Shown piece by piece: positions 1,980 to 63,209 of a DNA stretch of 64,000 bases (position 1 is the stretch's first letter; the number at the start of each line of letters is the position of its first letter). This DNA comes from Bacillus subtilis subsp. subtilis str. 168 (GTDB lineage Bacteria > Bacillota > Bacilli > Bacillales > Bacillaceae), in contig NC_000964.3 in assembly GCF_000009045.1 (NCBI RefSeq), positions 4,092,001 to 4,156,000 on the forward strand. Reading direction: 5' to 3'. The position numbers and the translations under genes are program-made. The notes beneath the pieces are model-generated. The model was not told the DNA's origin and did not search any database. It worked only from the letters and a program-made list of their open reading frames with translations.

Positions 1980-3317
1980 ATGGAACAGCAAGTAAAGGAC
2001 GACATCCAGCGTGTCTTTCAGCTTCAGAAAAAACAGCAAAAAGCCTTGCGCGCTTCAACAGCGGAACAGCGGAGAGAAAAGCTTCAACGCTTTTTAGATT
2101 CCGTCATCGCCCATGAAGAAGAAATCATCGAAGCGATCCGCAAAGACGTCCGCAAACCATATCACGAAGTCAAAAAAGCGGAAATCGAAGGAACAAAAAA
2201 AGCGATTAGAGATAATATGAATAACCTGGAACAATGGATGGCGCCTAAAGAAGTCGGTTCATCGTTAAGCCCTGACGCAAACGGAATTCTTATGTACGAG
2301 CCTAAAGGCGTCACACTCATCCTCGGCCCGTGGAACTATCCGTTTATGCTGACGATGGCGCCGCTTGCCGCTTCTCTCGCAGCCGGAAACAGCGCGATTG
2401 TGAAGCTGTCCGATTTCACGATGAACACGAGCAACATTGCTGCTAAAGTAATAAGAGACGCTTTTGATGAAAAAGAAGTCGCGATTTTTGAAGGAGAGGT
2501 TGAGGTGGCAACCGAACTACTTGATCAGCCGTTCGACCATATTTTCTTCACTGGAAGCACAAATGTCGGGAAAATTGTCATGACAGCGGCTGCCAAACAC
2601 TTGGCATCTGTCACACTTGAGCTTGGCGGCAAGAGCCCGACGATCATTGACAGTGAATACGATCTGATGGACGCAGCGAAAAAGATCGCCGTCGGGAAAT
2701 TCGTAAACGCCGGCCAAACCTGCATCGCACCTGATTACCTGTTCATTAAAAAAGACGTTCAGGACAGGTTCGCGGGGATTTTACAAACAGTCGTCAACGC
2801 TGGATTTATGGAGGATGATCATACCCCAGACCGCAGCAAATTTACGCAGATCGTCAATGACCGCAACTTCAACCGCGTCAAAGATCTGTTCGACGATGCC
2901 ATCGAAAGAGGGGCGGAAGTGGTGTTCGGCGGCGTATTCGATGCCAGCGACCGCACGATCTCGCCAACCGTTTTGAAAAACGTCACGCCTGACATGAAAA
3001 TCATGCAGGAGGAAATCTTCGCATCGATCCTGCCAATGATGAACTATGAAGACATCGACGAGGTCATCGATTACGTAAATGACCGCGATAAACCGCTTGC
3101 ACTTTATGTGTTCAGCAAAAACCAAGATCTGATTGACAACGTCCTTCAGCACACGACATCAGGAAATGCCGCCATCAATGATGTCGTCGTCCATTTCAGT
3201 GACGTCAACCTGCCATTCGGCGGCGTCAACACAAGCGGAATCGGCTCCTATCATGGGGTATACGGATTCAAAGAGTTTTCTCATGAGAAGGGTGTATTTA
3301 TTCAGGCCGCTGAATAA
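1980..3317 (+). CDS. aldX: Aldehyde dehydrogenase
   Basis: PWNYP, FTGS, LELGGKSP, GQTCIAPDY, EEIF and PFGG motifs; GAGGGG SD. Confidence 0.93.
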   Translation: MEQQVKDDIQRVFQLQKKQQKALRASTAEQRREKLQRFLDSVIAHEEEIIEAIRKDVRKPYHEVKKAEIEGTKKAIRDNMNNLEQWMAPKEVGSSLSPDANGILMYEPKGVTLILGPWNYPFMLTMAPLAASLAAGNSAIVKLSDFTMNTSNIAAKVIRDAFDEKEVAIFEGEVEVATELLDQPFDHIFFTGSTNVGKIVMTAAAKHLASVTLELGGKSPTIIDSEYDLMDAAKKIAVGKFVNAGQTCIAPDYLFIKKDVQDRFAGILQTVVNAGFMEDDHTPDRSKFTQIVNDRNFNRVKDLFDDAIERGAEVVFGGVFDASDRTISPTVLKNVTPDMKIMQEEIFASILPMMNYEDIDEVIDYVNDRDKPLALYVFSKNQDLIDNVLQHTTSGNAAINDVVVHFSDVNLPFGGVNTSGIGSYHGVYGFKEFSHEKGVFIQAAE

Positions 3318-3327
3318 TCGCATGATC

Positions 3328-3357
3328 AAAAGGCGCTTCCTTAGAGGAGCGCCTTTT
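3328..3357. terminator. Bidirectional terminator aldX/yxbD
   Basis: AAAAGGCGCTTCC...GGAGCGCCTTTT inverted repeat. Confidence 0.8.
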
Positions 3358-3835
3358 ATTGTAACTCCTTGACCAAAAGCAATTCATCACGGATAGGTAT
3401 TTTATTATCTGCCAGTAAAGGAATTTCGGGCTTCATCTTTCTGGCCGTCTCGACTGCATTCACAAATAGTCGATCCAACCGGTACCCTCTCTTCTGATAA
3501 AACGCTAATGCATGAATATTATCATTGGTTGTGATCAGTTTTATTTGTTTGATATTTCTCTCTCTGCATGCTTCCTCGGCTTTCTCTAGCAGAGCTGTTC
3601 CGATCCCTTTATTCTCAATGACACTATCCAGCGAAATGATTTCACAGGCATCTTCTTCAAATATGTATGTAATAAGGCCAACAATCTGGTTATCATCGTT
3701 GAGCATTCCATAACCATCTAATTCATCGCAGTTATAAATACCGCTAGAAATAACCATTTGCGGACTGCCCCAGTGTTTTTGAAAAAACGCGGAAACAAGA
3801 TCTTTAGGTACCTGGCATGTCGGAATAATATTCAT
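3356..3835 (-). CDS. yxbD: GNAT-family N-acetyltransferase
   Basis: Acetyl-CoA motif (ENKGIGTALL) and NIHALAFYQKRGY; GGAGG SD. Confidence 0.88.
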   Translation of the reverse strand: MNIIPTCQVPKDLVSAFFQKHWGSPQMVISSGIYNCDELDGYGMLNDDNQIVGLITYIFEEDACEIISLDSVIENKGIGTALLEKAEEACRERNIKQIKLITTNDNIHALAFYQKRGYRLDRLFVNAVETARKMKPEIPLLADNKIPIRDELLLVKELQ

Positions 3836-3914
3836 ATTTTCCTCCTTTTAGCTGAACAAAAATAAGAGAATTAACAACCTATTTTATGTCATTAATCCCC
3901 TTATCTAGTATTTA

Positions 3915-4907
3915 CTAGAACTTATAACTTGTCAAAAGCTGTCTGAATACCAATTGCGTGGATTGATAAGGATCAAAATCTGAATCCTGAGATTGGAAGA
4001 TTTGCTCTGGGGTCAATGTCTCTGCGTTCTCTGATAACGTTTGAATCAGACTTTCCAAATATCCATTTAACTCTGATTTGGACGATTCATGTAGGGATTG
4101 ATGATTTACAGCGAGTTCTCTAAATCTGTTATCACTGATTAATTTTTTTCGAAGAGCTGCTAGCATCAAGTCAAGCCATGCAGGCTGGCCAAATGTAATA
4201 TTTAAAGCTAACGTTGCTTGATCAGATTTGGTGGAGTGCCATAAACCTCTTGGCAAATACAGCATGGTTCCCGGTGTTAAATTAACGATTTCTGCATCTG
4301 GCAGATCCTCTTTTGGCGGATCTCCTTTCCAATATGACTGTAAATCATCAGGATAGTAAGGAGCCTCTGATAAATCATAGTGCTGCATTGGATTGCTCAC
4401 ATTTTCATTCTTGGCAAGCTTCCATGTTTTCTCACCTTGAATTTGAAAAATCAAGTTGGTGTAGGCGTCAAAATGGGCTTTGAATCCCCCGCCATTTTTC
4501 GCCGCGTAAACAATGGCTTTGGAAGAAGTACCCGCAGGCAGTCTTAATTCCGCTTTGAGTTTTTCTATCCACCTTCTGACTTGGGGAATAAATAGGTCGG
4601 TGAAATCAAACTCTAATGCAGCCCCTTTTTCATACCACTCTAAAGCCTCTGCAGGTGACACAAGAAATCTGTCTGTGATCCCTTCAGATTCTTCAATCAC
4701 AGCATCACCAACGACCATGACTGGATTATTGTAGATAGCCAATACGTTTTCTAGCGTTCTAACCTTTTCAAACCCCGGTATGCTTGTAAATCTCTCCACT
4801 TCTCCTCTGGCTACCAAAGGTTTTACAGGCCAATATTCTTCTAAAAACTCACTCATCGTTACAGGACTGATGATAGACTCCAAAACCGATTCGGTTACAG
4901 CACTCAT
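3915..4907 (-). CDS. yxbC: JmjC/cupin 2-oxoglutarate-Fe(II) oxygenase
   Basis: HFD...WH facial triad (AHFDAYTN; PRGLWHST) and LTPGTMLYLPRG. ATG at 4907 follows a GGGAGG SD. Confidence 0.88.
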   Translation of the reverse strand: MSAVTESVLESIISPVTMSEFLEEYWPVKPLVARGEVERFTSIPGFEKVRTLENVLAIYNNPVMVVGDAVIEESEGITDRFLVSPAEALEWYEKGAALEFDFTDLFIPQVRRWIEKLKAELRLPAGTSSKAIVYAAKNGGGFKAHFDAYTNLIFQIQGEKTWKLAKNENVSNPMQHYDLSEAPYYPDDLQSYWKGDPPKEDLPDAEIVNLTPGTMLYLPRGLWHSTKSDQATLALNITFGQPAWLDLMLAALRKKLISDNRFRELAVNHQSLHESSKSELNGYLESLIQTLSENAETLTPEQIFQSQDSDFDPYQSTQLVFRQLLTSYKF

Positions 4908-4971
4908 ATTATCCCTCCCAAAAAAAGTAACTTCACCACAAAGATATAACATTTTTTTCTAAAAGTAAATA

Positions 4972-5000
4972 TTGACAGAATTATCAGAGGATTATAATAT
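4972..5000 (+). promoter_or_regulatory. SigA-type promoter for the peptide-yxbB-asnH transcript, overlapped by a CodY-like box
   Basis: TTGACA at 4972-4977. TATAAT at 4993-4998 (15-bp spacer) or TAATAT at 4995-5000 (17-bp spacer). AATTATCAGAGGATT at 4979-4993 matches the CodY consensus AATTTTCWGAAAATT at 12/15. Confidence 0.65.
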
Positions 5001-5048
5001 TTAGTTGTGCGTGATAGCCTATTTTTTTACAAGGAAGGAGGGAAAAGG

Positions 5049-5117
5049 ATGAAAAAGGCTTATAAGAAACCTCGTCTTTTTGAACTGCGCCGTGCTGTAG
5101 CAGCTGGCGGCCATTAA
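5049..5117 (+). CDS. 22-aa putative RiPP precursor, copy 1: MKKAYKKPRLFELRRAVAAGGH
   Basis: AAGGAGG SD, ATG...TAA, YxxPxL motif. Too short for the ORF track; translated by hand. Confidence 0.82.
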   Translation: MKKAYKKPRLFELRRAVAAGGH

Positions 5118-5166
5118 TCTCATATAGCATTTGACATCTAGTACTCTATTTTAGGAGGGATGCTCA

Positions 5167-5235
5167 ATGAAAAAAGCTTATAAGAAACCTCGCCTTTTTG
5201 AACTGCGCCGTGCTGTAGCAGCTGGCGGCCATTAA
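5167..5235 (+). CDS. 22-aa putative RiPP precursor, copy 2 (identical peptide)
   Basis: AGGAGG SD 8 nt upstream. Differs from copy 1 only at synonymous sites (AAG>AAA, CGT>CGC). Confidence 0.82.
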   Translation: MKKAYKKPRLFELRRAVAAGGH

Positions 5236-5284
5236 TCTCATATAGCATTTGACATCTAGTACTCTATTTTAGGAGGGATGCTCA

Positions 5285-5353
5285 ATGAAAAAAGCTTATA
5301 AGAAACCTCGCCTTTTTGAATTGCGCCGCGCTGTAGCAGCTGGCGGTCATTAA
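5285..5353 (+). CDS. 22-aa putative RiPP precursor, copy 3 (identical peptide)
   Basis: AGGAGG SD. Differs from copy 2 only at synonymous sites (CTG>TTG, CGT>CGC, GGC>GGT). Confidence 0.82.
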   Translation: MKKAYKKPRLFELRRAVAAGGH

Positions 5354-5415
5354 TCTTATCCAAAACGATTAACGTTTGAGGCTATCACGCCAACTTGATA
5401 AGGAGGATGCTGAAG

Positions 5416-9169: not shown

Positions 9170-10365
9170 GCATCTTTTATTCGTTTTCCGCACTTAGGGG
9201 ATTAGCAATGGGGATTTTTTCGCCTATTTGGATTCTTTATCTGATATCTAAAGATTATGATTTCCTTCAGATTGGATTAATGGGAGCGGTACTTGAAATT
9301 GCTAAGCTTATATTTGAAGTTCCTTCCGGCGTTTTTGCTGATCGTTATGGAATTAAAATTTCAATTGCCAGTTCATTCTTTTTCTCCATCCTTACATGGG
9401 CCTTCTTCCCTTTTATCGATTCAGCTGCTATTTGCATACTGGCTATGATCATATGGGCTTTATCAGATTCCTTAATTTCCGGTTCTTTTGAAACTTGGAT
9501 GAGCCGTGTCGCAGGGGAAGATCGATTCGGCAAAGAAATGATGAAAAACACACAATTGCTAATCACTTTTTTAATTATTGGAAGTATTGCCAGCGGGTAT
9601 TTGTATTCATTAAATATCTATTTTCCTTTCCTGCTCGTTATGGTGATCTACTTATTACTATTTATTTGGATGTCTGTATTTATTAAAGTCCCTTCTGTTT
9701 CCGAAACAAATCATGGGGATCAGAACCAACATGATTCGATAAAGATTATCAAAGAAAGTTTAAAAATTATCTTTAACAAAAAAAGGGTTCTTTTAATCGT
9801 CATAGCCGGTTTCTTTACAGCCACAGCCTATGACACAATTTCCCGTTACTGGCAGCCTTTTTTGAGTGATTTAGGCTTTTCAGAAAAGTCACTGGGATAT
9901 ATTTTTGCCCTAGGAGGGTTTACCGCTCTCGTTCTTTTGACATTAACCATCAGGTTCGAAAAGAAGATCGAAAAAAATCCATATCTCGCTTTAACCTCAT
10001 TGGATTCCATGGGCATGGTCATGACTTTTCTATTGTCTAGAGCATTCAGGCCGCTGGGCATTCCATGTACAGCGTTTTTGCTTGCAATTGAAGATATTCA
10101 TCATCCGATCGTAACAAGTTACTTAAATAAGTTTTTCCCCGATTCATACAAGAACACACTTTTCTCGTTAAACTCAGGGGTAGGAGCAATTGGAGAAATT
10201 CTTTCCGGTGTCATTTTCGGCATCATTTCCGCAGCCTTTGGGCTCTCTGCCATGTTTGTTGTTGTAGCTGTATTTCTATTAATCCCTATTATCCTTTATA
10301 CGATAGTGCCTAAGATTAAAGACAATGATATGAAAGTTCAGATTGAAAAATCCCAGCAAGTGTAA
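9166..10365 (+). CDS. yxaM: MFS efflux transporter
   Basis: Many hydrophobic segments; MFS motif A-like GVFADRYGIK; overlaps the asnH stop (ATGA). Confidence 0.88.
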   Translation: MSIFYSFSALRGLAMGIFSPIWILYLISKDYDFLQIGLMGAVLEIAKLIFEVPSGVFADRYGIKISIASSFFFSILTWAFFPFIDSAAICILAMIIWALSDSLISGSFETWMSRVAGEDRFGKEMMKNTQLLITFLIIGSIASGYLYSLNIYFPFLLVMVIYLLLFIWMSVFIKVPSVSETNHGDQNQHDSIKIIKESLKIIFNKKRVLLIVIAGFFTATAYDTISRYWQPFLSDLGFSEKSLGYIFALGGFTALVLLTLTIRFEKKIEKNPYLALTSLDSMGMVMTFLLSRAFRPLGIPCTAFLLAIEDIHHPIVTSYLNKFFPDSYKNTLFSLNSGVGAIGEILSGVIFGIISAAFGLSAMFVVVAVFLLIPIILYTIVPKIKDNDMKVQIEKSQQV

Positions 10366-12928: not shown

Positions 12929-14137
12929 CTAGACTTTTGTTTTCTTTGCAATAGGCTGCCACGACAGATACGTAGCGCTTCTCCACAACCACTCAAACGG
13001 CCCCATCCGAAAGACACGAAGCCAAAGGTGGCTGAAGACCATTTGAACGGCACAAACAGCAATTGTAATGAGCACACCGGCAGCAGGGTACACTTTTCCA
13101 TACAGGCCCAAGCCGTAATGATAAAAAATCCAAGTACACACAATAGACTGCATCAAATAATTGGTAAATGCCATCCTCCCAACAGCGGAGAATGATTGCA
13201 GCACTGTTCTCACTCTTGTTTTATGATAAAGATAGACAACCGTTGTAACATAGAAAAACATGAGGAAAGGCGCGCCAATCAGCAAACATATTTCTTTATC
13301 CGTTACACTGTACAGCACCTGGGCGCCGATGCCGATGACAAGCCCAGCCATCCATAATCGTTTTAATCCTTTGCGATGCTTTTCCGGTTCATGCAAATAC
13401 CGTGATTTTGCTGCCGCAGCTCCCAGCAAAAACATGCTGAAATATGGAATGGATGCAAAGAAGTAGTTGAGCGGATTATACGTAAGCATGCCATTCGAAG
13501 ACATGTAAACAAGACGGTCGTGGATCCGCTGTTCTGCAATATCCTTCAGGCTGCCGCTTCCATAAACATGAATCGCTTGTTTTGCCTGCTGTGTTACCGC
13601 TTGTACCCATTCCTGTCCGTTTGATTGATCAAAACTTGTCAACATGAACGGAATGGAAAACAGAAGATACAAAGAGACCGCCCATATCAGCAGTGTTTTC
13701 GGCTTTGCTTTTCGAAACAAGAGCAGGACAAATCCGAGCAGGGCATATTCTGTTAAAATATCCCCGTCCCATATCAAAAAGGCATGAATCGTTCCAAACA
13801 AGAGAAGCGCCATTAACCTTCTCACATATAACGGAACAAACCGTTTCCCTTTGTTTTCTGCTCTCTCCATCATGACAACCATGCCAAATCCAAATAAAAA
13901 GGAAAACAATAAAATACATTTTGTTTGAATGAAGAATTTCAGTATGTCTGCGGCGGCAAAATCAGCTTCAGACCACTTATCCATGAAAAAATTCTCTTTT
14001 CCAAGCATAGACAAATACATATCCGGATAACTGAAATGTGCCAGATTGACAAATAAGATGCCGAAAATCGCCATTCCTCTCAGCACATCAAGCACACCGA
14101 TCCGCTCATTTGTTAAAGTCGGCTGTAATGAAGACAT
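12929..14137 (-). CDS. yxaH: DUF418-like polytopic membrane protein
   Basis: RIGVLDVLRGMAIFGIL, GRMAFTNYLMQS, GPFEWLWR. Confidence 0.85.
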   Translation of the reverse strand: MSSLQPTLTNERIGVLDVLRGMAIFGILFVNLAHFSYPDMYLSMLGKENFFMDKWSEADFAAADILKFFIQTKCILLFSFLFGFGMVVMMERAENKGKRFVPLYVRRLMALLLFGTIHAFLIWDGDILTEYALLGFVLLLFRKAKPKTLLIWAVSLYLLFSIPFMLTSFDQSNGQEWVQAVTQQAKQAIHVYGSGSLKDIAEQRIHDRLVYMSSNGMLTYNPLNYFFASIPYFSMFLLGAAAAKSRYLHEPEKHRKGLKRLWMAGLVIGIGAQVLYSVTDKEICLLIGAPFLMFFYVTTVVYLYHKTRVRTVLQSFSAVGRMAFTNYLMQSIVCTWIFYHYGLGLYGKVYPAAGVLITIAVCAVQMVFSHLWLRVFRMGPFEWLWRSATYLSWQPIAKKTKV

Positions 14138-32219: not shown

Positions 32220-32942
32220 TTAAAGGCCCATTTTGATCCATCTAGTTTTAGAAAAGCGAAGGACAATCGCATTTATGATAATAATTGAAACTAAATACAA
32301 AATAATAAATAAAACATCATTACTCCCAAGTGTCATGTTATCAGATTGCAGCACTCTTTCTATTCGGGGGTACATAGTGTTACCTGCCTCAAAAGGAGCA
32401 ATGAAACCAAACGTTTTATTGCTTATAGCTACTAAGATAACAGAAGTCATCCAATAAACGATACTGACACCTATACTAATTAATATATTAGGACATAACA
32501 CGCTTATAGTTCCGATAATTAGAATATACTGCAGTATAACTGCAGAAAATAAAAAAAGTAATAATGCAAAATGCGAAAAATCATGGTACATCAACGATAT
32601 GATTAGCAGGCCTAGCGTTATAAATGCAAAACATTCTAAAAATAAAACAGCTATCTTTTTATAAAAGAAAGTATAGATGTTCTCTCCAATTAACTTGTAA
32701 AAGAGAATATTTTTGTTTGAATACTCTCTATTAATAAAGAAAGCTATAACAAATGAAAATAACATCAAACCAAACTGGGTCGCAACAGTATAGGAGCTAA
32801 AGAAAAACATTTCAGGTGTAACATTACTGACTTTATCGATTCCAACAAGTAAAAAATAACCCAGCAAAAATAAAAATACAAACATTGCTCCTAAAATAAT
32901 GATAACTTTGTTGCTAATACTCTTTTTAAACTCTAATTTCAT
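32220..32942 (-). CDS. yydJ: ABC transporter permease, epipeptide immunity (EpeB)
   Basis: Six hydrophobic segments; last gene of the yydFGHIJ operon. Confidence 0.88.
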   Translation of the reverse strand: MKLEFKKSISNKVIIILGAMFVFLFLLGYFLLVGIDKVSNVTPEMFFFSSYTVATQFGLMLFSFVIAFFINREYSNKNILFYKLIGENIYTFFYKKIAVLFLECFAFITLGLLIISLMYHDFSHFALLLFLFSAVILQYILIIGTISVLCPNILISIGVSIVYWMTSVILVAISNKTFGFIAPFEAGNTMYPRIERVLQSDNMTLGSNDVLFIILYLVSIIIINAIVLRFSKTRWIKMGL

Positions 32943-32962
32943 CTCAAGCCCCCACTGTTTTA

Positions 32963-33592
32963 TTACTCATTTATATACACTTCAATTAATTTATCCACTG
33001 AATGATATTGTTGAATTTCTTGGTGATTAAATATATAATAATCCCCTTCTATCGCCTTTAAATCAGACAAATCATGTGTAATGTTGATGATAATCTTCTC
33101 GGGGTTCTCCTGAATATACTTGTTTAAGAAGCCATGAATCTCTATAACCGTTTTTTTGTCTAATGAATTCGTTATTTCATCTAAAACAATAATATTTTTA
33201 TCCTCTAATAAGAAACTGAGCAATTTTAATTTTTGCTTTTGTCCATCACTCAAATTTTTGATCAGAACTTTTCCATCAATATTATCCAGATTAAGTAAAT
33301 ATGCGATTTTATCTATCATTTTTGCATCAAATTTTTTACTCAAAAAGTGTAATAAAAAGTCCTTAGAAACATCATTAGGTATATTCGACGAGCTGGATAT
33401 TAAAGAAACATTTTGACGAATATCTCTGCCGATTCTTTTGCTATTATTCAACAAAAAGTCTTTAGCAAGCTGTGATTTACCGACTCCATTTTTTCCGACA
33501 ACGTGATTAATTTTCCCGCTCGAAAAATGCAAGTCGGTGTCCTGAAGTAACGTTTTGCCTTTCACTTTTAAAGTGTAATTCGCTATATTCAT
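32963..33592 (-). CDS. yydI: ABC transporter ATPase (EpeA)
   Basis: GKNGVGKS, LSDGQKQK, IVLDE. Confidence 0.9.
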   Translation of the reverse strand: MNIANYTLKVKGKTLLQDTDLHFSSGKINHVVGKNGVGKSQLAKDFLLNNSKRIGRDIRQNVSLISSSSNIPNDVSKDFLLHFLSKKFDAKMIDKIAYLLNLDNIDGKVLIKNLSDGQKQKLKLLSFLLEDKNIIVLDEITNSLDKKTVIEIHGFLNKYIQENPEKIIINITHDLSDLKAIEGDYYIFNHQEIQQYHSVDKLIEVYINE

Positions 33593-33741
33593 ATACATAC
33601 TCCTAGGAAATATTTGCATAATAATAAAATGTTCTGCCTTGTGATTTGTTACTAATGTCTAAGCTTTTGAGGTACCTCTTTCGTTTCCGATCCGGAAGCG
33701 AAAGAAATGTTTTTAGATGGCTAATTTGGAGATCTTTTACT

Positions 33742-34500
33742 CTAGTTTACAATATATAATATCCAATGTACAACTGAATTCACTGCAAGGCCAATCCCTA
33801 TAATTTGAATCGTAAGAACTAACCAATGATTTGTCTTAAAACGGCTATATTCATCTAAGCTCAGAAAAGCTAAAAGAATTTTGTAACCATCAGAATTCAA
33901 TATTGGGATTAAGTTCCACAATAAAGTAGACGAGAAAAGCATAAATGCCATAGTTAATGCTTCACTGGAAAATGTAAATTGATTTATTAATTCTAATGTA
34001 TTTATTAAAAGATAATTGATAAACAAGCCAAATAAATGAACGATTATCTTTTCATTTCTTGATAGCATGTAGGTTTCATTCAATTGGACATAAAAAGCAG
34101 GAAATACATAAAAATTCAGTTTGAATCCCACTTTATCAAAGTTTTTCCCGAAAAATTTTAAGGAATAAATATGTCCCAGTTCATGAAGCACTATATTCAT
34201 TATAAAATAAATAACTATAATTATCCACATTTTCCAGCCGTAAAATACTGAGGACAATCCATTTTGCAATTTTATTAAATGAATATAATTTAATATGAAC
34301 ATGAGAGCCGTAAAGGATAAGAACAGATAAAAAAACTTTGGTGATACTTTCTCTTTATACATTTTAAAACGTAATAATTGTTTATCTGACAGAGAATTTA
34401 AACTATTTTTATAGTATTCTCCGCTTTTTTTGTCTTTTATAAATACGTTGTTTTGCACAAGCACTTCATATTTTTCATCTTCATACTTTAAAATTTTCAT
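33742..34500 (-). CDS. yydH: Membrane metalloprotease, M50-like (EpeP)
   Basis: HELGH within TM segments; NLIPILNSDG. Confidence 0.88.
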   Translation of the reverse strand: MKILKYEDEKYEVLVQNNVFIKDKKSGEYYKNSLNSLSDKQLLRFKMYKEKVSPKFFYLFLSFTALMFILNYIHLIKLQNGLSSVFYGWKMWIIIVIYFIMNIVLHELGHIYSLKFFGKNFDKVGFKLNFYVFPAFYVQLNETYMLSRNEKIIVHLFGLFINYLLINTLELINQFTFSSEALTMAFMLFSSTLLWNLIPILNSDGYKILLAFLSLDEYSRFKTNHWLVLTIQIIGIGLAVNSVVHWILYIVN

Positions 34501-35440
34501 TATAGTATTTTTCCATATAAGGATAGAAGTAGTTTATTTTTTCTGCAGAGTTGAATAAGGAACCACAAACTCCACAAATAGAGGAAAATTCATAAGGAAT
34601 GTCAAATTCCTCTATTTTGTTATTTTCTTTTAAAATATTCAAAAACCATTTGAATCCTTCTTTTCTAAGAATAAATAATAGCAAATTGGAATTTAACTTT
34701 TCCACGGTTCTTTCGAAACTTTGGTTATATTCTTCCCTTAGGGTTATTTTCGTTTCAAAAATAGCAGGGGAACAACATGGATAAATTTCTCCATCATGAT
34801 GATATACAATGTCATATCCGGGACAATGTAAGGAATCTTCATCTTCAAGACTGTAAAATTTATGTATGTTTTCTTGCTTAATTCTAGTTTTAGCAGCGCC
34901 AACTGATATCATTGGAAATTTTGTTATCTTTACACCTAAGATTGAATCCCCCAATTCCTCTAAAATGTGGTTGGACATTTTGTCTTTGGTAACTGCCATA
35001 TTAAGAGAAATATCGATATCAGGGTATTTCCTGCTATGTTCTAATATGTTTTTAATACTGGAAGACTTGACAAATGGAGCATGGTACTCATCATAACTTA
35101 TAGTCAGTGCTATCACATTTAAAGAATTCATATCATGAAAGTACTCCTGGACCTTTTTCTTGCTCAAACCCCAAAATCCATTAGAGATCAACGTTATTTG
35201 TTTTTCATATGGTTTAATGATTTCCATTAGTTCTTTTAAAAATTTATAATCTAAAAAAACTTCCCCACCTGTAAAAGAAATCACTTGAATGGTTTTGTTT
35301 TTTGCAAATTCAGTTACTAACTCTCTTATGTATTCTTTTTCCATCCTGGTTGTTGAAGTTGGTGAACTAGAAAAACAACAATGGTCACAGGATGCATTAC
35401 ACCTTGAATCTAAATTGATTGATACTGTTTTATTATACAT
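34481..35440 (-). CDS. yydG: Radical SAM peptide epimerase (EpeE)
   Basis: CNASCDHC (CX3CX2C), FTGGE, C-terminal Cys residues. Confidence 0.92.
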   Translation of the reverse strand: MYNKTVSINLDSRCNASCDHCCFSSSPTSTTRMEKEYIRELVTEFAKNKTIQVISFTGGEVFLDYKFLKELMEIIKPYEKQITLISNGFWGLSKKKVQEYFHDMNSLNVIALTISYDEYHAPFVKSSSIKNILEHSRKYPDIDISLNMAVTKDKMSNHILEELGDSILGVKITKFPMISVGAAKTRIKQENIHKFYSLEDEDSLHCPGYDIVYHHDGEIYPCCSPAIFETKITLREEYNQSFERTVEKLNSNLLLFILRKEGFKWFLNILKENNKIEEFDIPYEFSSICGVCGSLFNSAEKINYFYPYMEKYYNENFKV

Positions 35441-35462
35441 GAAATATCCCCCAACAAATGGT

Positions 35463-35485
35463 AAAGGAGAGTTAGACTCTCCTTT
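35463..35485. other. Perfect stem-loop between precursor and epimerase genes (probable mRNA processing/stabilising element)
   Basis: AAAGGAGAG-ttaga-CTCTCCTTT. Confidence 0.65.
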
Positions 35486-35497
35486 GTACCCCTCTAA

Positions 35498-35647
35498 TTA
35501 ATGACCACTTCCAAGAATCCAGCGATTTTCTTTTGATTTTACAAAATACCAAAGATCATTCACTTTTGCTAACTTTTGTGATTCATCTAATAGACCCTTA
35601 AATTCTAAGTTTTTCACAGTCTCATTGTTAGTGATTTCCTTTTTCAT
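35498..35647 (-). CDS. yydF: Epipeptide precursor EpeX, 49 aa (MKKEITNNETVKNLEFKGLLDESQKLAKVNDLWYFVKSKENRWILGSGH)
   Basis: Translated by hand; strong AGGAGGAGGG SD; directly upstream of the radical SAM gene. Confidence 0.92.
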   Translation of the reverse strand: MKKEITNNETVKNLEFKGLLDESQKLAKVNDLWYFVKSKENRWILGSGH

Positions 35648-38044: not shown

Positions 38045-38534
38045 GGGGTGTGGGGTTCAGGGATGGTGATATGCTGCTCCCCTAAAAGTAGATAGATGAA
38101 TTTTAGAAAATCTGTTTGCCTTGGGGAGTTTTTTCATGGCTGGACAATTATACTACAAGGAAGAAATACTAATACTTATAGAATGTAATTGGGTAATGAT
38201 TCGGAGAAAGAGGTTGCGAAATAATATGGTATTACACTGAAACAATTATCAATGGAGAACATGCACGATATAGCCGTTCTATATTCTCCCTCTATTATGG
38301 CACTCATTAGTAGACATAACCGTAAAAAAATGCACTCAAAAAAAGTCCATTCTATATAACTCTCGCTAGGGTGGACCTTTTTCAACATTCAAAGTACTAG
38401 ATTTTTTCTAGTGAAAGAATAAGAAAAGACATAAGTTCTATTTTATCACTCTGTTATAGGTTAAGTTATTACGGTGTTTCATTATATACTGAATTTAAAC
38501 ACCCTTGACATTATGGGAATTTTTAAAACAGGTT

Positions 38535-38560
38535 AAAAGGAAGTTCTATAAGAACTCCCT
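38535..38560 (-). terminator. Terminator after yydD
   Basis: AGGGAGTTC-ttata-GAACTTCCT followed by TTT on the minus strand. Confidence 0.6.
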
Positions 38561-38577
38561 AGTTTAATATTATTTGG

Positions 38578-40338
38578 TCAAAATCTAAAACCAAAAAATC
38601 TATTTTTATCTTCATTGTTTCTATCTAATTTTGCAACAATCATACCTTTCGACTCTAATTCTTGAAGGTCATCTAATAATAATTCATTTTTATTTATTGT
38701 TACAAAATATTGTCCGATCCTATTCTCTAACAGACTTGAATTGATATGTTTTAATAATGTACCTTTTACATGAGGATCAGGATTAGAATAAGATCCGTCA
38801 TGAATTAAAATATTCAAACTACACTTATTTATACACCTGTATAAAAACCAAGTAAGATCAAATATATTTATCTTCATATGGAGTCTACCATGTGAACGTT
38901 CATCCGGTATAGAACAAGAAATTTTGATCCTTCCTGTAGTTGATTGTTTTGCGTTACTTATTCTATTATCATATTCAAAATCTAAAAATCCATGTTGGTT
39001 GTATGTAACATCCATTAGATTATTAAAAAGCTTCTTTAACTCACTAACTATAGCGCTATAAGATTGAAACTCATCATAATACATTGAATTAACTCTTAAT
39101 ATTTCATGTTGAAGTTCATTAATCTTATCAAAAATATGGTTTTTTTTATCGTAGTCACTAATTCTCAATCTTACTTCCGCTAACTCTATTTCTTTCCTTC
39201 TTTGTTCTTCCATCACAATGGAAATATCCTCAATGAAATTGTTACTCTTTAAAATTCTGGCACTTGATTCCAGTTGTTCTGTTAATCCTTGCTTTTTGAT
39301 ATTAAGTTTTTTTAAATCGGCTTGTATTTTAACAATTTTATCTTTAAAATAACTCCCTCTACTTTCTACCATGAAATTATAGAACTCTTGGACTTTATTA
39401 TAATTCTGTTTTACTTCCTCTGGAAAAAAACCTACAATATCTTCATAGAATTTTTCTATATTTTCTAATTCTTTAATCTTAGTTACTTTTTTATTTAAAT
39501 CATCTATATTTCTTTGATATTGTTTACAAATATGTTCATTTTCAAATATTTCATTTTGTATTTTATTAAGTTCACTTTTAATTTCTGAGTACCTATTTGT
39601 ATCATTATTATATTTATTGGCAGTCTTAGTTTGATAGATAACTCTATTGTAATCCTCTATCTCATTTATTAATTCATCTTCCTTAACTTTTAAATCGCCA
39701 ATGTTAATATTCATTGATTCAATCAATTTTATTTCACTATTTAATTTTTCAATCTTATCCCGAAAAACCTTTATGTTTTTTTCTGTATGAGTTGGTAAAG
39801 TAAAAAGATAGTTAAGTAATTTATATTGTTTTAACCCTCCCCTATTCGGTAAAACTATATCATTAAACCCTGTCTTTTCGTCTCTTATAATATACTCCCT
39901 TAACGCCGCAAAAGTTATATCCTCTTTCTCACCCTTTAAAATTTCCTTTTCAATAAATTTTTTATATACACTTATACTAACTTTTTTCCATTCCTCCAAA
40001 TTAAAAGTTAAAGAAGTATCATGTAATGTATAACCATGTTTAGGAGAATTAAAAGATCTAGCAAGGAATACTTGATTTCCATCAATTTCCACATTCAAAA
40101 CAATAAAAACGTTTTTATTGAGAAGAATTTCATTTGTCGTATAAAAATTTGATATAGTCTTCCCTAGTAAAAAGGAGATGCATTCAATCATCGTTGACTT
40201 ACCTACACCATTAGTCTCTTCATGATCTTCTCTCTTTTCACCAAGTATTATATTTACTCCTACAGCATTAAATTTATACTCTTTCAAAATTTCTTGGGAA
40301 TTGCAAACAAAAAGATTTTTTATAATCATAACAATCAC
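38578..40338 (-). CDS. yydD: SMC/Rad50-like ABC ATPase with long coiled coil (ABC-3C / Lamassu LmuB-like)
   Basis: Walker A NGVGKST, long heptad-rich region, signature-like RSHG, Walker B ILIHD. Confidence 0.82.
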   Translation of the reverse strand: MIVMIIKNLFVCNSQEILKEYKFNAVGVNIILGEKREDHEETNGVGKSTMIECISFLLGKTISNFYTTNEILLNKNVFIVLNVEIDGNQVFLARSFNSPKHGYTLHDTSLTFNLEEWKKVSISVYKKFIEKEILKGEKEDITFAALREYIIRDEKTGFNDIVLPNRGGLKQYKLLNYLFTLPTHTEKNIKVFRDKIEKLNSEIKLIESMNINIGDLKVKEDELINEIEDYNRVIYQTKTANKYNNDTNRYSEIKSELNKIQNEIFENEHICKQYQRNIDDLNKKVTKIKELENIEKFYEDIVGFFPEEVKQNYNKVQEFYNFMVESRGSYFKDKIVKIQADLKKLNIKKQGLTEQLESSARILKSNNFIEDISIVMEEQRRKEIELAEVRLRISDYDKKNHIFDKINELQHEILRVNSMYYDEFQSYSAIVSELKKLFNNLMDVTYNQHGFLDFEYDNRISNAKQSTTGRIKISCSIPDERSHGRLHMKINIFDLTWFLYRCINKCSLNILIHDGSYSNPDPHVKGTLLKHINSSLLENRIGQYFVTINKNELLLDDLQELESKGMIVAKLDRNNEDKNRFFGFRF

Positions 40339-40736
40339 TAACTCTCCGTTCTGCTAATCATATTTTGATTAAAAGAAACTTTACCTAATGAATATAAAAA
40401 AGTTAACGATAAATACAGTATCCGTTCAATATTCAAATTTATTATAATACCTTGACTCTTAGCATAATCAAGAAAAAGTTGATCAATATGTTTTTCCTTC
40501 TCTAACAGTTCATAAAGTATCTTTGATGAGTATAAAATATTTTCTTCCACAGCATTATATTTAGTTAATAAAAAATGATTCATTTCTGGCCTCTCCGCCT
40601 TTTCCTTTTTTAAAGGAGAATTATTCACTAGAGGAATAAGATCATTTCCAATTTGAATGTTTTTAAACTCATTTTCTAATAAAACATAAGAGTATTTGAG
40701 AATATTTTCAGCTGTTTCAATTTTAAGATCAATCAT
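40338..40736 (-). CDS. yydC: Small protein; putative ABC-3C middle component / LmuC-like
   Basis: Overlaps both neighbours (translational coupling); family assignment is from position and size only. Confidence 0.7.
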   Translation of the reverse strand: MIDLKIETAENILKYSYVLLENEFKNIQIGNDLIPLVNNSPLKKEKAERPEMNHFLLTKYNAVEENILYSSKILYELLEKEKHIDQLFLDYAKSQGIIINLNIERILYLSLTFLYSLGKVSFNQNMISRTES

Positions 40737-42174
40737 TCTTAACACTTCTTTTGTTATCATTAAAAATCTCACATTCATAAATGCACCAACATGTTAAAAT
40801 CTTAATGTATTTTTTCGTTAAAGCCTTTGAATATGGTAAAACTGAATGACATTCTAGATAAATCTCATTAACAATTTTTACAAATATCTCATCTCCATTA
40901 TTATATTGATTATGAAACTCTAGATATTTGTCTACTATCGTCTCAGCAATCAATTCCTTTTTATCAGCACTTACATACGAAGTGGAATCCATTATATGGT
41001 TTATCACACCAAAATACTCAGAATAACTATCGAATTTCCGTTTAAAAGTTTCCCCACTTTTCATATCATAAAATTTTTTATCTAAACCAATTTGATTATC
41101 AAAATTACTAGTAAATGTTTTATAACTTTCTCTATACTCATGAAAATCTATAATAAAGCTCTTAAACTCATCTTCATCAATTTTATCATCGTTATCTTCT
41201 ATTTCTTTTTCAATAAGGCTCTCTAATCTATTAATCTTATAATTTAACTTCCCTTCCTGTAGTCTCCTTCCTCCTTGGTTGTTTTTTGACCAGTATTTAT
41301 ATTCGGTATTCCAAATGTAGTATGTTACTTCTGTCTCGCCATTATCTAAATTCACATCCACCGAAATAAATTCTGGAGTAGCATACTCATCCTTTATAAT
41401 GGCTCCACTTACTAATTCTAAGAATGGATTTTCATTTGTATTTGCAGTAATATTAAATGAAGAATCATGTACATGTCCTGCCAAATATAGATCAATAAAG
41501 TAATCATCAAAATGTGCCTTTATTGATTCTCTTTCGGAAGATTCAATACAACCTAACGTATGGTGCCCAATAGCTATATTTAATACCTTGCCCTTATTTT
41601 TCTCTTTGTTCATCTTCCTTATTGCTTTATATAATTTCATCTGTGCAGTTAATAACGTTCCTTCTTCACCTTTTTTATCTGATAACAGACATGTATTTAT
41701 TGATAAAACATTATACTTCTCCGATTGATACAAAAAATGCAAATCTTCTTCCGGATATTTAACACCCATAAAATCTTCATAAAAATCGAAAAATTTCCTT
41801 TGACCTTCCACTAATATATTTGTAGCTTTTTGATCTAGTTTATCCAACATTTCTGAGGGGTTAGGAGATTTCATAATACTATCAATCAAAAGTGTCCTCG
41901 TCATGTCTCTAGATATATCGTGATTTCCTGGCACTAAGTGTACGTTATTCTTACTTAATCCCATACTTTTAATAATTCCATTAAGATATTCTTTAACATC
42001 TTCGTTATACACATCACCTTTGTGTGCTATATCTCCAGTTAATAATAAAAAATCAAAATCTGACTCTCTTCTTAAAACTTCTATAAAATCTAATAATTTA
42101 TCTCTCATTACAATAGTGTCATAATTTTGAAACTGAAAATGCAAATCAGAAATTTGTAAAAAACGTACCTTCAA
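40729..42174 (-). CDS. yydB: Calcineurin-like metallophosphoesterase with C-terminal helical domain (putative effector)
   Basis: SDLH, TGD, GNHD, GHH and GHVH motifs; C-terminus ends ...CWCIYECEIF...; GAGAGG SD. Confidence 0.85.
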   Translation of the reverse strand: MKVRFLQISDLHFQFQNYDTIVMRDKLLDFIEVLRRESDFDFLLLTGDIAHKGDVYNEDVKEYLNGIIKSMGLSKNNVHLVPGNHDISRDMTRTLLIDSIMKSPNPSEMLDKLDQKATNILVEGQRKFFDFYEDFMGVKYPEEDLHFLYQSEKYNVLSINTCLLSDKKGEEGTLLTAQMKLYKAIRKMNKEKNKGKVLNIAIGHHTLGCIESSERESIKAHFDDYFIDLYLAGHVHDSSFNITANTNENPFLELVSGAIIKDEYATPEFISVDVNLDNGETEVTYYIWNTEYKYWSKNNQGGRRLQEGKLNYKINRLESLIEKEIEDNDDKIDEDEFKSFIIDFHEYRESYKTFTSNFDNQIGLDKKFYDMKSGETFKRKFDSYSEYFGVINHIMDSTSYVSADKKELIAETIVDKYLEFHNQYNNGDEIFVKIVNEIYLECHSVLPYSKALTKKYIKILTCWCIYECEIFNDNKRSVKND

Positions 42175-42435
42175 TACAAACATCCTCTCATAAGTATATT
42201 TATCCCCTATATATTTCTAGAAAACTTTTTATTCTATATCATCTTTACTCTTTAATATATTAAGACTCTTTCCACACCATCAAATAAATTATAACCTAAA
42301 CATAACTCTTTACTCATTTTAGTATTGTATTTAAGTCAAACATTGCATTGGTTGCTGAAATATTATATTCATTGAATTATTCCATTAAATAGCTTTTAGT
42401 TGAACTTTAGTCTTTCTGTAATGGTGGAGATGCTC

Positions 42436-62786: not shown

Positions 62787-62859
<73 letters not shown>

Positions 62860-62894
62860 AAATGTTTTATTTTTCTCTACTAAGTAAAGTAAAA

Positions 62895-62971
62895 TGGCGG
62901 TCCGGACGGGACTCGAACCCGCGACCTCCTGCGTGACAGGCAGGCATTCTAACCAACTGAACTACCGGACC
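62895..62971 (-). tRNA. tRNA-Asp (GTC)
   Basis: GGTCCGGTAGTTCAG...CTGTCAC...GTTCGAGTCC...CCA. Confidence 0.95.
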
Positions 62972-63052
62972 TTACAGTAATTGCCCGGAGAGCTGTCGTG
63001 TCAGCTCTCACAGACAAATAAGGAATTTAGCAATAACGCTAAAGTAAATCAA

Positions 63053-63124
63053 TGACCCGTACGGGATTCGAACCCGTGTTACCGCCGTGAAAGGGCGGTG
63101 TCTTAACCGCTTGACCAACGGGCC
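63053..63124 (-). tRNA. tRNA-Glu (TTC)
   Basis: GGCCCGTTGGTCAAGCGG...CTTTCAC...GTTCGAATCC. Confidence 0.95.
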
Positions 63125-63133
63125 TTCACGAAA

Positions 63134-63209
63134 TGGTGAGCCATGAAGGACTCGAACCTTCGACCCTCTGATTAAAAGTCAGATGCTCTACCAACTGAGC
63201 TAATGGCTC
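63134..63209 (-). tRNA. tRNA-Lys (TTT)
   Basis: GAGCCATTAGCTCAG...CTTTTAA...GTTCGAGTCC...CCA. Confidence 0.95.

Follow-up and report, generated by a model that had tools for sequence, protein, structure and literature searches.

The question raised by the yydB-yydC-yydD operon (yydBCD) of Bacillus subtilis subsp. subtilis str. 168 is what kind of machine its three products form and what that machine is for. The operon was analysed within a 64,000-nucleotide stretch of the chromosome (NC_000964.3, forward-strand positions 4,092,001 to 4,156,000), hereafter referred to as the window, to whose numbering all coordinates refer. An earlier interpretation of the nucleotide sequence, made without database searches (the sequence-only reading), had proposed an anti-phage system of the ABC-three-component (ABC-3C) or Lamassu type with a metallophosphoesterase effector. 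Based on gene architecture, homologies, intact catalytic and ATP-binding motifs, effector swapping and mobile carriage, we consider it likely that the three genes of yydBCD form a defence cassette that belongs to the short Lamassu (ABC-3C) family, was acquired horizontally and has an effector acting by release and oligomerisation. Membership of the Lamassu/ABC-3C family is the firmest part of this statement and is very probable, while a role in defence against phages or plasmids, deduced from the behaviour of related systems, is probable.

The open reading frame (ORF) list places yydB, yydC and yydD head to tail on the minus strand as co-directional, touching genes, which are the only genes of an operon flanked by rlmH and fbp. 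The first gene, yydB (40729..42174), encodes a LmuA-like effector of 481 amino acid (aa) residues from a TTG start and was identified through Pfam, PADLOC and its identity to the PDB chain 9a6c_B; yydC (40338..40736) encodes a LmuC-like middle component of 132 aa recognised by the Pfam model MC6; and yydD (38578..40338) encodes an SMC/Rad50-like ABC ATPase of 586 aa, resembling short LmuB proteins, from a GTG start, as indicated by Pfam, PADLOC and Foldseek. The yydB and yydC genes overlap by 8 nt (ATGATTGA), while yydC and yydD share 1 nt (TAGTG) if the GTG start is used or are separated by an 8-nt gap if an ATG start, discussed below, is used instead. The GC content over positions 38578-42183 is 0.273, as compared to 0.447 in the window outside its two AT-rich tracts, and the operon represents the lowest-GC 3.6-kb stretch within the window. 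The description of the locus as three overlapping, AT-rich genes is confirmed, the overlap of yydC with yydD depending on the GTG start, and the Pfam matches given below speak against chance reading frames.

YydD shows several matches to known defence machinery. Pfam analysis detected DUF2326 (98.8 bits, E 2.8e-28, threshold 28.7) together with AAA_23, while PADLOC returned the model PDC-M68B (E 4.7e-46, 155 bits as compared to 746 bits for a true member) and, across residues 4-444, the LmuB model PDLC03859 (E 5.9e-12); COG and JGI already name this ATPase family after YydD. The AlphaFold model (pLDDT 85.8) reveals a split ABC head with approximately 260 residues in long helices, and a Foldseek search of the PDB with this model retrieved YydD itself first (9a6c_A, 100% identical), followed by LmuB chains of three Lamassu cryo-EM entries, 9uxh_F (1.5e-12), 9hqu_A (2.5e-12) and 9hqx_B (2.9e-11), with the heads of Rad50, JetC and SMC proteins ranking behind them.

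The nucleotide-binding elements of YydD, including the NGVGKST (residue 43) and ILIHD (residue 510) motifs quoted in the sequence-only reading, were found where expected. The Walker A motif (ETNGVGKST, residues 41-49, 40192..40218, minus strand) was defined by alignment; its G46 and K47 are invariant in 60 YydD homologues and retained in distant DUF2326 proteins. The equivalent of the signature motif, S-H-G-R (residues 482-485, 38884..38895, minus strand, by alignment), has an invariant G484 and nearly invariant S482, H483 and R485 in the same homologues, and its S-x-G core is kept across distant DUF2326 ATPases. The Walker B variant, also defined by alignment (LNILIHDGS, residues 509-516, 38791..38814, minus strand), contains invariant H513, D514 and S516 residues, with G515 present in at least 90% of the homologues, and lacks the catalytic glutamate since Asp514 is followed by glycine. 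Throughout the DUF2326 family the pattern is hhhHD[G/S], with glycine in the YydD family and serine in distant proteins. Between these motifs lies a coiled-coil insert (residues ~185-446, 39001..39786, minus strand), visible in the AlphaFold model as long helices (residues 185-207, 213-236, 240-302, 307-363, 369-425 and 428-446). The apex of the coiled coil is formed by G-F-F-P (residues 303-306), of which F305 and P306 are invariant in the 60 homologues; neither a CxxC zinc hook nor a conserved cysteine was observed at this position in those homologues or in the distant DUF2326 alignment.

The small middle protein, YydC, passes the Pfam threshold for ABC-3C middle component 6 (MC6) with 28.6 bits against a cut-off of 27.2, the domain being encoded at 40362-40565 on the minus strand. 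Its homologues span 75 to 137 aa, because of which the N-terminal ~55 aa of YydC are regarded as a variable extension. YydC is 46% identical (E 1e-21) to the 75-aa middle component of a cassette with a SIR2 effector, and homologous middle components are present in all of the related cassettes examined.

In YydB, an enzymatic head is joined to a helical C-terminal domain. Pfam Metallophos covers residues 7-240 (E 1.8e-18), and the protein carries the motifs DLH (residue 13), GDIAH (50), GNHD (86), GHH (206) and GHVH (236), as well as CIYECEIF (467-474), so that the YydB motifs quoted in the earlier interpretation were likewise located, although that motif had been taken as the end of the protein and is in fact followed by ten further residues (NDNKRSVKND). 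The five metallophosphoesterase motifs (DxH, GD, GNHD, GHH and GHxH) are invariant across 22 YydB homologues, as is the C-terminal W-x-I-x-x-C-x-I motif. The head (residues 5-331, 41191..42171, minus strand), comprising a catalytic core and a beta-rich cap, was delimited on the basis of motifs, NCBIfam matches and fold matches: the NCBIfam model DS8_antiphage aligns with it over model positions 1-321 (E 1.7e-30, 105.6 bits) and DS9_1 matches it with an E value of 1.1e-17. In PADLOC, residues 5-327 match the 'Effector' model PDLC00736 (E 1.1e-65), and YydB also matches PDC-S60. The label of PDLC00736 reads 'Effector / Endonuclease' only; we take it to be a CBASS (cyclic oligonucleotide-based antiphage signalling system) model, which no tool output confirms. 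CBASS itself was considered and rejected, as the operon contains no CD-NTase cyclase and YydB no SAVED domain; a Pfam scan of YydB identified neither SAVED nor any other sensor domain. A CD-NTase was also sought beside more distant relatives of the YydB head on two contigs, both of which were uninformative. At L024 789-4793 the head occurs in a different setting, in which a distant metallophosphoesterase of 667 aa (26% identity to the YydB head) precedes a 317-aa protein without Pfam hits and a radical-SAM-like gene.

The AlphaFold model of YydB (pLDDT 80.5), whose sequence is 100% identical to that of the B. subtilis YydB chain 9a6c_B, shows a metallophosphoesterase core, a beta-rich cap extending to approximately residue 316 and a helical domain at residues 337-470. 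Among solved folds, the closest are acid sphingomyelinase, Lmo2642, Rv0805, GpdQ and the purple acid phosphatases, with Mre11 ranking lower. Searches of PDB sequences using single sequences and a YydD profile yielded nothing beyond coiled-coil noise and short matches to MRE11 motifs, among which phmmer aligned MRE11 with YydB residues 7-56. These matches bear on the possibility that yydBCD is a housekeeping DNA-repair or end-processing complex similar to SbcCD (Mre11-Rad50), in which YydD and a YydB nuclease would process hairpins or breaks. In fold classes, a Rad50-like ATPase alongside a calcineurin-like phosphoesterase does resemble SbcC/SbcD, Rad50 and Mre11 chains are among the Foldseek matches of the YydD and YydB models, and Lamassu is itself thought to be derived from Rad50/Mre11. 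However, the NCBIfam SbcD model (TIGR00619) scores only 15.8 bits on YydB against a cut-off of 77.65, as opposed to 105.6 bits for DS8; acid sphingomyelinase and cyclic-nucleotide phosphodiesterase folds rank above Mre11; and YydD possesses neither the CxxC zinc hook nor the Walker B glutamate.

The helical C-terminal domain of YydB (residues 335-476, 40756..41181, minus strand), delineated by AlphaFold helices together with profile and BLASTP evidence, closes with a W-x-I-Y-E-C-x-I-F motif (40762-40785, minus strand) and resembles CTD11. A profile of this domain family retrieves proteins that pass the CTD11 model (40.7 and 32.2 bits), and the terminal EC-D/E-IF motif is common to YydB and CTD10 proteins. 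The domain is thus likely homologous to CTD11 proteins, through a transitive sequence link, YydB itself scoring below the formal Pfam threshold. When this profile was used to search 1.84 billion representative proteins, only 48 clusters were recovered, carrying phosphoesterase, SIR2 or SMEK heads or a very short one; members of the last kind pass Pfam CTD11. Many relatives of the domain are short: in the proteins P0130, P0131, P0137 and P0139-P0145 (183-214 aa), CTD11 comes after only ~70 residues and there is no recognisable enzymatic head, which recalls the effector-less Lamassu clade O of Haudiquet et al.

Examination of related loci revealed how the components are combined and carried. A trio consisting of a Metallophos protein (~460-490 aa), an MC6-like protein (75-137 aa) and a DUF2326 protein (~585 aa) recurs with unrelated flanking genes in Bacillales and Clostridium, and was seen at two different loci of B. 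atrophaeus, in Clostridium sporogenes and on a metagenomic contig. Copies of the trio adjoin Mu-type and IS21 transposases in Fictibacillus, come straight after a RosmerTA-like pair in Paenibacillus, are carried on a plasmid in Priestia megaterium and lie between a serine recombinase and a helix-turn-helix (HTH) repressor in an IMG/VR prophage. In sister cassettes with ATPases sharing 35-43% identity with YydD, a SIR2 effector stands in for the phosphoesterase, and the last ~160 residues of this SIR2 effector align to YydB residues 320-476 (BLASTP 1e-20). On proteobacterial and actinobacterial plasmids, more distant cassettes of the DUF2326/MC6 kind bear HNH or SMEK heads on CTD10, adjoin Gabija-like, Shedu, CHAT and helicase genes, correspond to PADLOC PDC-M68 and are annotated by NCBI as 'ABC-three component system'. 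The replacement of the phosphoesterase by SIR2 in sister cassettes, and the presence of SMEK heads on the same C-terminal domain, agree with the variable effector previously envisaged. Since these heads are exchanged on a common C-terminal domain, middle component and ATPase, the proposed modular architecture, a hallmark of the family, is demonstrated: heads swap on a co-evolving chassis that is carried by mobile elements.

Such head replacement, together with the patchy distribution on plasmids and prophages and the location of yydBCD in a Rok-silenced island of 27% GC, argues further against a housekeeping repair complex, which we consider very improbable and disfavour relative to a defence cassette. 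As regards phages themselves, tblastn of deposited phage genomes identified no relative of YydD, and prophage copies were encountered only in IMG/VR. A genome-collection scan with YydD alone produced a single match, a 543-bp contig of Cellulomonas carbonis (NZ_BMEB01000052.1); this contig encodes YydD residues 467-586 at 100% identity and is almost certainly B. subtilis contamination.

Several observations were made in the neighbourhood of these cassettes. In the prophage-like region of a SIR2 variant (L009 4376-6309), two additional genes lie between a Peptidase_M78 gene and the SIR2 effector; they encode a 384-aa SMC_N/AAA_23 ATPase with weak PADLOC matches to LmuB and AbiL and a 259-aa protein without matches, and may constitute a further two-gene defence candidate that is as yet unclassified. 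Directly upstream of the cassette in Paenibacillus (L006 4032-5717) is an HTH-Peptidase_M78 protein matching PADLOC RmrA (RosmerTA, 4e-25), followed by a DUF3368 protein matching PDC-S70. The second B. atrophaeus copy lies downstream of groES-groEL and is followed by an 835-aa NB-ARC/TPR STAND NTPase (L007 10527-13034) without a PADLOC match, which may be an Avs-like sensor. A B. atrophaeus cassette (L002/L003) adjoins a 687-aa Thioredox_DsbH gene (3306-5369), and the presence downstream of Thioredox_DsbH fragments of 61-64 aa (9881-10066 and 13335-13529) suggests that the insertion disrupted or duplicated part of this gene. On the B. cereus plasmid NZ_CP135061.1 (L020 3469-5010), the SIR2-type cassette looks degraded or mis-annotated, as it comprises a 276-aa SIR2 protein, a separate 110-aa protein and then a 250-bp unannotated gap at the place of the middle component.

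Comparison with characterised systems places yydBCD closest to short Lamassu and to ABC-3C, the latter reportedly defined by Krishnan et al. 2020. Short type II Lamassu, represented by DdmABC of Vibrio cholerae and LmuACB of Salmonella enterica (9hqu/9hqx), displays the same order of effector, small middle gene and ~600-aa ATPase; its effector is likewise an enzymatic head on a helical C-terminal domain, the LmuB Walker B motif lacks the catalytic glutamate as in YydD, and the zinc hook is absent from YydD as it is from the Vibrio system. The effector also touches the ATPase in cells, as indicated by YydB-YydD cross-links. The two differ in that YydB carries a binuclear metallophosphoesterase head where those systems have a Cap4, PD-(D/E)xK or Mrr nuclease, in that YydB and YydC combine a CTD11-like domain with an MC6-like component, a pairing inferred from Pfam hits, while short type II Lamassu combines CTD7 with MC3, and in that YydD is only ~12% identical to the solved LmuB chains and has D-G in place of D-[Q/S/T/E] in Walker B. 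With the DUF2326/MC6/CTD10 systems (PDC-M68), yydBCD shares the ATPase family, its Walker B HD[G/S], S-x-G and QY..T.N motifs, an MC6 middle component and the effector C-terminal h-h-x-E-C-D/E-h-F motif; it differs in that those ATPases are 19-24% identical to YydD, that their heads are HNH or SMEK and that their effectors end in CTD10 as opposed to the CTD11 link of the YydB family. YydB has no match to PDC-M68A, the HNH-CTD10 effector, and the operon thus falls outside the full PDC-M68 definition.

The head of YydB (~5-331) is the same metallophosphatase module as that of DS-8, a metallophosphatase-NACHT protein, and DS-9A, both of which were found by DefensePredictor to be anti-phage in E. 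coli and to require their metallophosphatase catalytic residues for defence (PMC13092281). The nearest solved folds of DS-8, like those of YydB, belong to the acid-sphingomyelinase/SMPDL3 group, although the homology of YydB with DS-8 is confined to the domain because its score of 105.6 is far under the full-length NCBIfam cut-off of 790. The regulatory parts also differ: in DS-8 a NACHT NTPase is fused to the metallophosphatase, and DS-9 has a HAD phosphatase as its partner, whereas yydBCD employs a separate SMC-like ATPase and an adaptor. SbcCD (Mre11-Rad50) combines a coiled-coil ABC ATPase with a calcineurin-fold phosphoesterase, as does yydBCD, but the latter has a middle component in addition, belongs to cassettes that exchange their heads and is distributed with mobile elements, and none of the SbcCD hallmarks sought (an SbcD-family nuclease, a zinc hook and a Walker B D-E) was found in it. 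Taken together, the architecture of an effector, a small middle component and an SMC-like ATPase put forward by the sequence-only reading is borne out by Metallophos, MC6, DUF2326 and LmuB structural matches, and the similarity to LmuB or ABC-3C domains on which that reading had been made to depend was found with DUF2326, MC6, the PADLOC LmuB model and the LmuB chains. The Pfam ABC-3C models suggested as a check gave a divided result, with DUF2326 and MC6 above threshold and CTD11 on YydB below it. As for the effector type, a phosphoesterase is rarely discussed rather than new, because one Lamassu preprint lists 'phosphoesterase' among LmuA heads.

Structural work on nuclease-type Lamassu describes a resting A1:B2:C1 complex that sequesters the C-terminal domain of the effector, binding to DNA ends, and a released effector that tetramerises via its C-terminal domain. 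By analogy, two YydD protomers and YydC would hold one inactive YydB monomer by its helical C-terminal domain, with YydD binding ATP and probably hydrolysing it poorly; the in-cell YydB-YydD cross-links, YydD self-links and co-elution described below, and the integrative model 9a6c, lend such a resting complex indirect support. Upon encountering aberrant DNA arising from phage or plasmid replication (free ends, hairpins), ATP-dependent engagement of the YydD heads would release YydB, which would oligomerise through its C-terminal domain, thereby switching on its binuclear metallophosphoesterase head. Active YydB would then destroy an essential phosphodiester substrate and the infection would be aborted. 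In B. subtilis the xenogeneic silencer Rok dampens the operon. We regard it as an even call whether these release-and-oligomerise details hold for YydBCD.

With respect to what YydB may hydrolyse, we lean tentatively towards nucleotides or another small phosphodiester, because the closest folds belong to SMPDL3/acid-sphingomyelinase-like enzymes and to cyclic-nucleotide phosphodiesterases, and because the head is homologous to DS-8 and poorly similar to SbcD. Cleavage of DNA or RNA is a somewhat less favoured possibility, plausible because sister systems use HNH, and lipid head groups appear an improbable target. A stronger version of this proposal, which we hold to be doubtful, is that YydB is not a nuclease but a nucleotide-directed phosphodiesterase or pyrophosphatase that is activated by release from YydCD and C-terminal oligomerisation. 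If so, its action would lead to the collapse of nucleotide pools or the destruction of a phage-required or signalling nucleotide, yydBCD would be the first Lamassu with small-molecule hydrolysis by a metallophosphatase as its output, and a substrate would be provided for the orphan DS-8/DS-9 effectors in a natively expressed, Rok-tuned system of the foremost Gram-positive model organism.

Published data show that the operon is expressed and that YydB and YydD contact each other. When B. subtilis 168 was studied by in-cell cross-linking and co-fractionation proteomics, all three Yyd proteins were detected, with intensity-based absolute quantification (iBAQ) values of ~1.7e7 for YydD, 1.8e7 for YydB and 4.4e6 for YydC; YydB and YydD were joined by heteromeric cross-links, YydD carried self-links, and the co-elution of YydB with YydD scored 0.896 and 0.86; PDB entry 9a6c, chain A of which is YydD, is a deposited integrative model resting on these cross-link data (PMC10090944). 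These data bear directly on the suggestion that yydBCD is a silenced and functionally inert xenogeneic remnant in this strain, its genes being intact but held off or at sub-threshold levels by Rok. In favour of such a state, Rok binds to and represses yydBCD, regarded as an operon in the published work (PMC8894471), the genes belong to a cluster that is shut off in a GerR-dependent manner during sporulation (PMC517825), and no phenotype is reported in the searchable literature. The presence of all three proteins in growing cells of strain 168 by mass spectrometry, the YydB-YydD cross-links, YydB and YydD iBAQ levels (~1.7e7) close to those of Spo0F and Rex, the intactness of all catalytic and nucleotide-binding motifs and reading frames that are full length relative to homologues nevertheless render an inert remnant unlikely.

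Slightly less unlikely is that the same machine is naturally directed at plasmids or competing mobile elements instead of lytic phages, as in DdmABC-like elimination or prophage competition. Both plasmids and phages are targets of the type II Lamassu DdmABC, and copies of the cassette reside on plasmids and at a prophage integrase-repressor hotspot. Conversely, strain 168 is generally known to maintain many plasmids routinely, and protection against phages is likewise documented for validated Lamassu systems; the two roles could coexist.

A number of points weigh against the assignment of yydBCD as a Lamassu-family defence cassette with a release-and-oligomerise effector. A large Lamassu census lists Cap4, Mrr, protease, Sir2, FMO, HNH, SMEK and lipase heads, and no phosphoesterase. 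The authors of the DS-8/DS-9 study note homology to SMPDL3A and state that the substrate is not known (PMC13092281). Within YydB, Pfam CTD11 scores 14.8 bits over residues 388-474, under its threshold of 27.7, and the link between the C-terminal domain and the CTD10 set is weak (hhalign E 3e-4, probability 40%). The Walker B motif of short LmuB proteins is published as hhhhD[Q/S/T/E], and the D-G of YydD falls outside this set; in the Foldseek search, moreover, LmuB is only narrowly ahead of Rad50, with TM-scores of ~0.4-0.5 for both. In the searchable literature, no phage or plasmid phenotype, functional study or effector substrate was found for yydBCD. Finally, although they carry the operon, strain 168 and its derivatives serve as standard permissive hosts of many phages and take up plasmids with ease, which would imply either narrow specificity, evasion by laboratory phages or an operon that is kept below its effective threshold by Rok.

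The Lamassu/ABC-3C family, its logic and, through databases and one preprint, phosphoesterase-type heads were already known. What is new here is a specific and well-supported assignment of the yydBCD operon of B. subtilis 168, the connection of the YydB head to the recently validated DS-8/DS-9 module, the exchange of phosphoesterase for SIR2 inside one narrow clade, and the recognition that the standard laboratory host natively expresses the system, with components of it cross-linked in cells. As strain 168 and its derivatives are the standard Gram-positive chassis in which foreign defence systems are tested, a native Lamassu-family complex could confound such tests. At the same time, its genetics, its regulation by Rok and the existing in-cell cross-link data make yydBCD a convenient native model, and the question of the YydB substrate is directly approachable because the activation logic of the chassis that carries the head is known from structures. 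The result thus represents an annotation upgrade and an experimental lead, and no new principle.

Some details of the reading frames merit comment. An upstream ATG at 42183 would extend yydB to 484 aa (40729..42183), the TTG at 42174 being codon 4 of this longer frame; the 481-aa form equals the length of PDB chain 9a6c_B. Similarly, a longer yydC frame (40338..40778) encodes 146 aa, the 132-aa form being obtained from the ATG at 40736. In YydD, the methionine at residue 4 is invariant in the alignment of 60 homologues, because of which the true start may be at 40329, 9 nt downstream of the GTG.

Transcription signals were also sought. A terminator-like hairpin of 10 bp followed by UUUUAA (38535..38560, minus strand) begins 18 nt past the yydD stop codon, and RNA folding assigns it -12.3 kcal/mol with a z-score of -3.1 relative to shuffled sequences; a consensus terminator scan did not call this hairpin because its T-run is too short. 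A candidate sigma-A promoter (TTGATG-18 nt-TATATT, 42254..42283, minus strand) agreeing with the consensus at 9 of 12 positions was located by a consensus scan in the 252-bp AT-rich spacer upstream of yydB, which is weak evidence as sites of this type are as frequent in shuffled sequence, the scan being at background level in AT-rich DNA. A repeat search for island borders returned no delimiting direct or inverted repeats, only chance matches in AT-rich sequence, and an Rfam scan identified no RNA element within or near yydBCD. The 530-bp convergent spacer between fbp and yydD (38045-38577) contains a 70-aa ORF (38176..38388, minus strand) without supporting evidence or an Rfam match.

On the other side of fbp lies the second AT-rich tract (32220-35647, minus strand, GC 0.30), which resembles the yydF-J epipeptide operon. 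Its first ORF encodes 49 aa (35498..35647) and the tract further contains genes for a 319-aa radical-SAM-like protein with a CxxxCxxC motif (34481..35440) and a 252-aa membrane protease-like protein (33742..34500), as well as two more ORFs (32963..33619 and 32220..32942). With its normal GC content between two AT-rich tracts, fbp therefore sits between two acquired islands. Further along the window, at 62787-63209 on the minus strand, a cluster of four tRNA genes was identified (Rfam RF00005, 67-78 bits).

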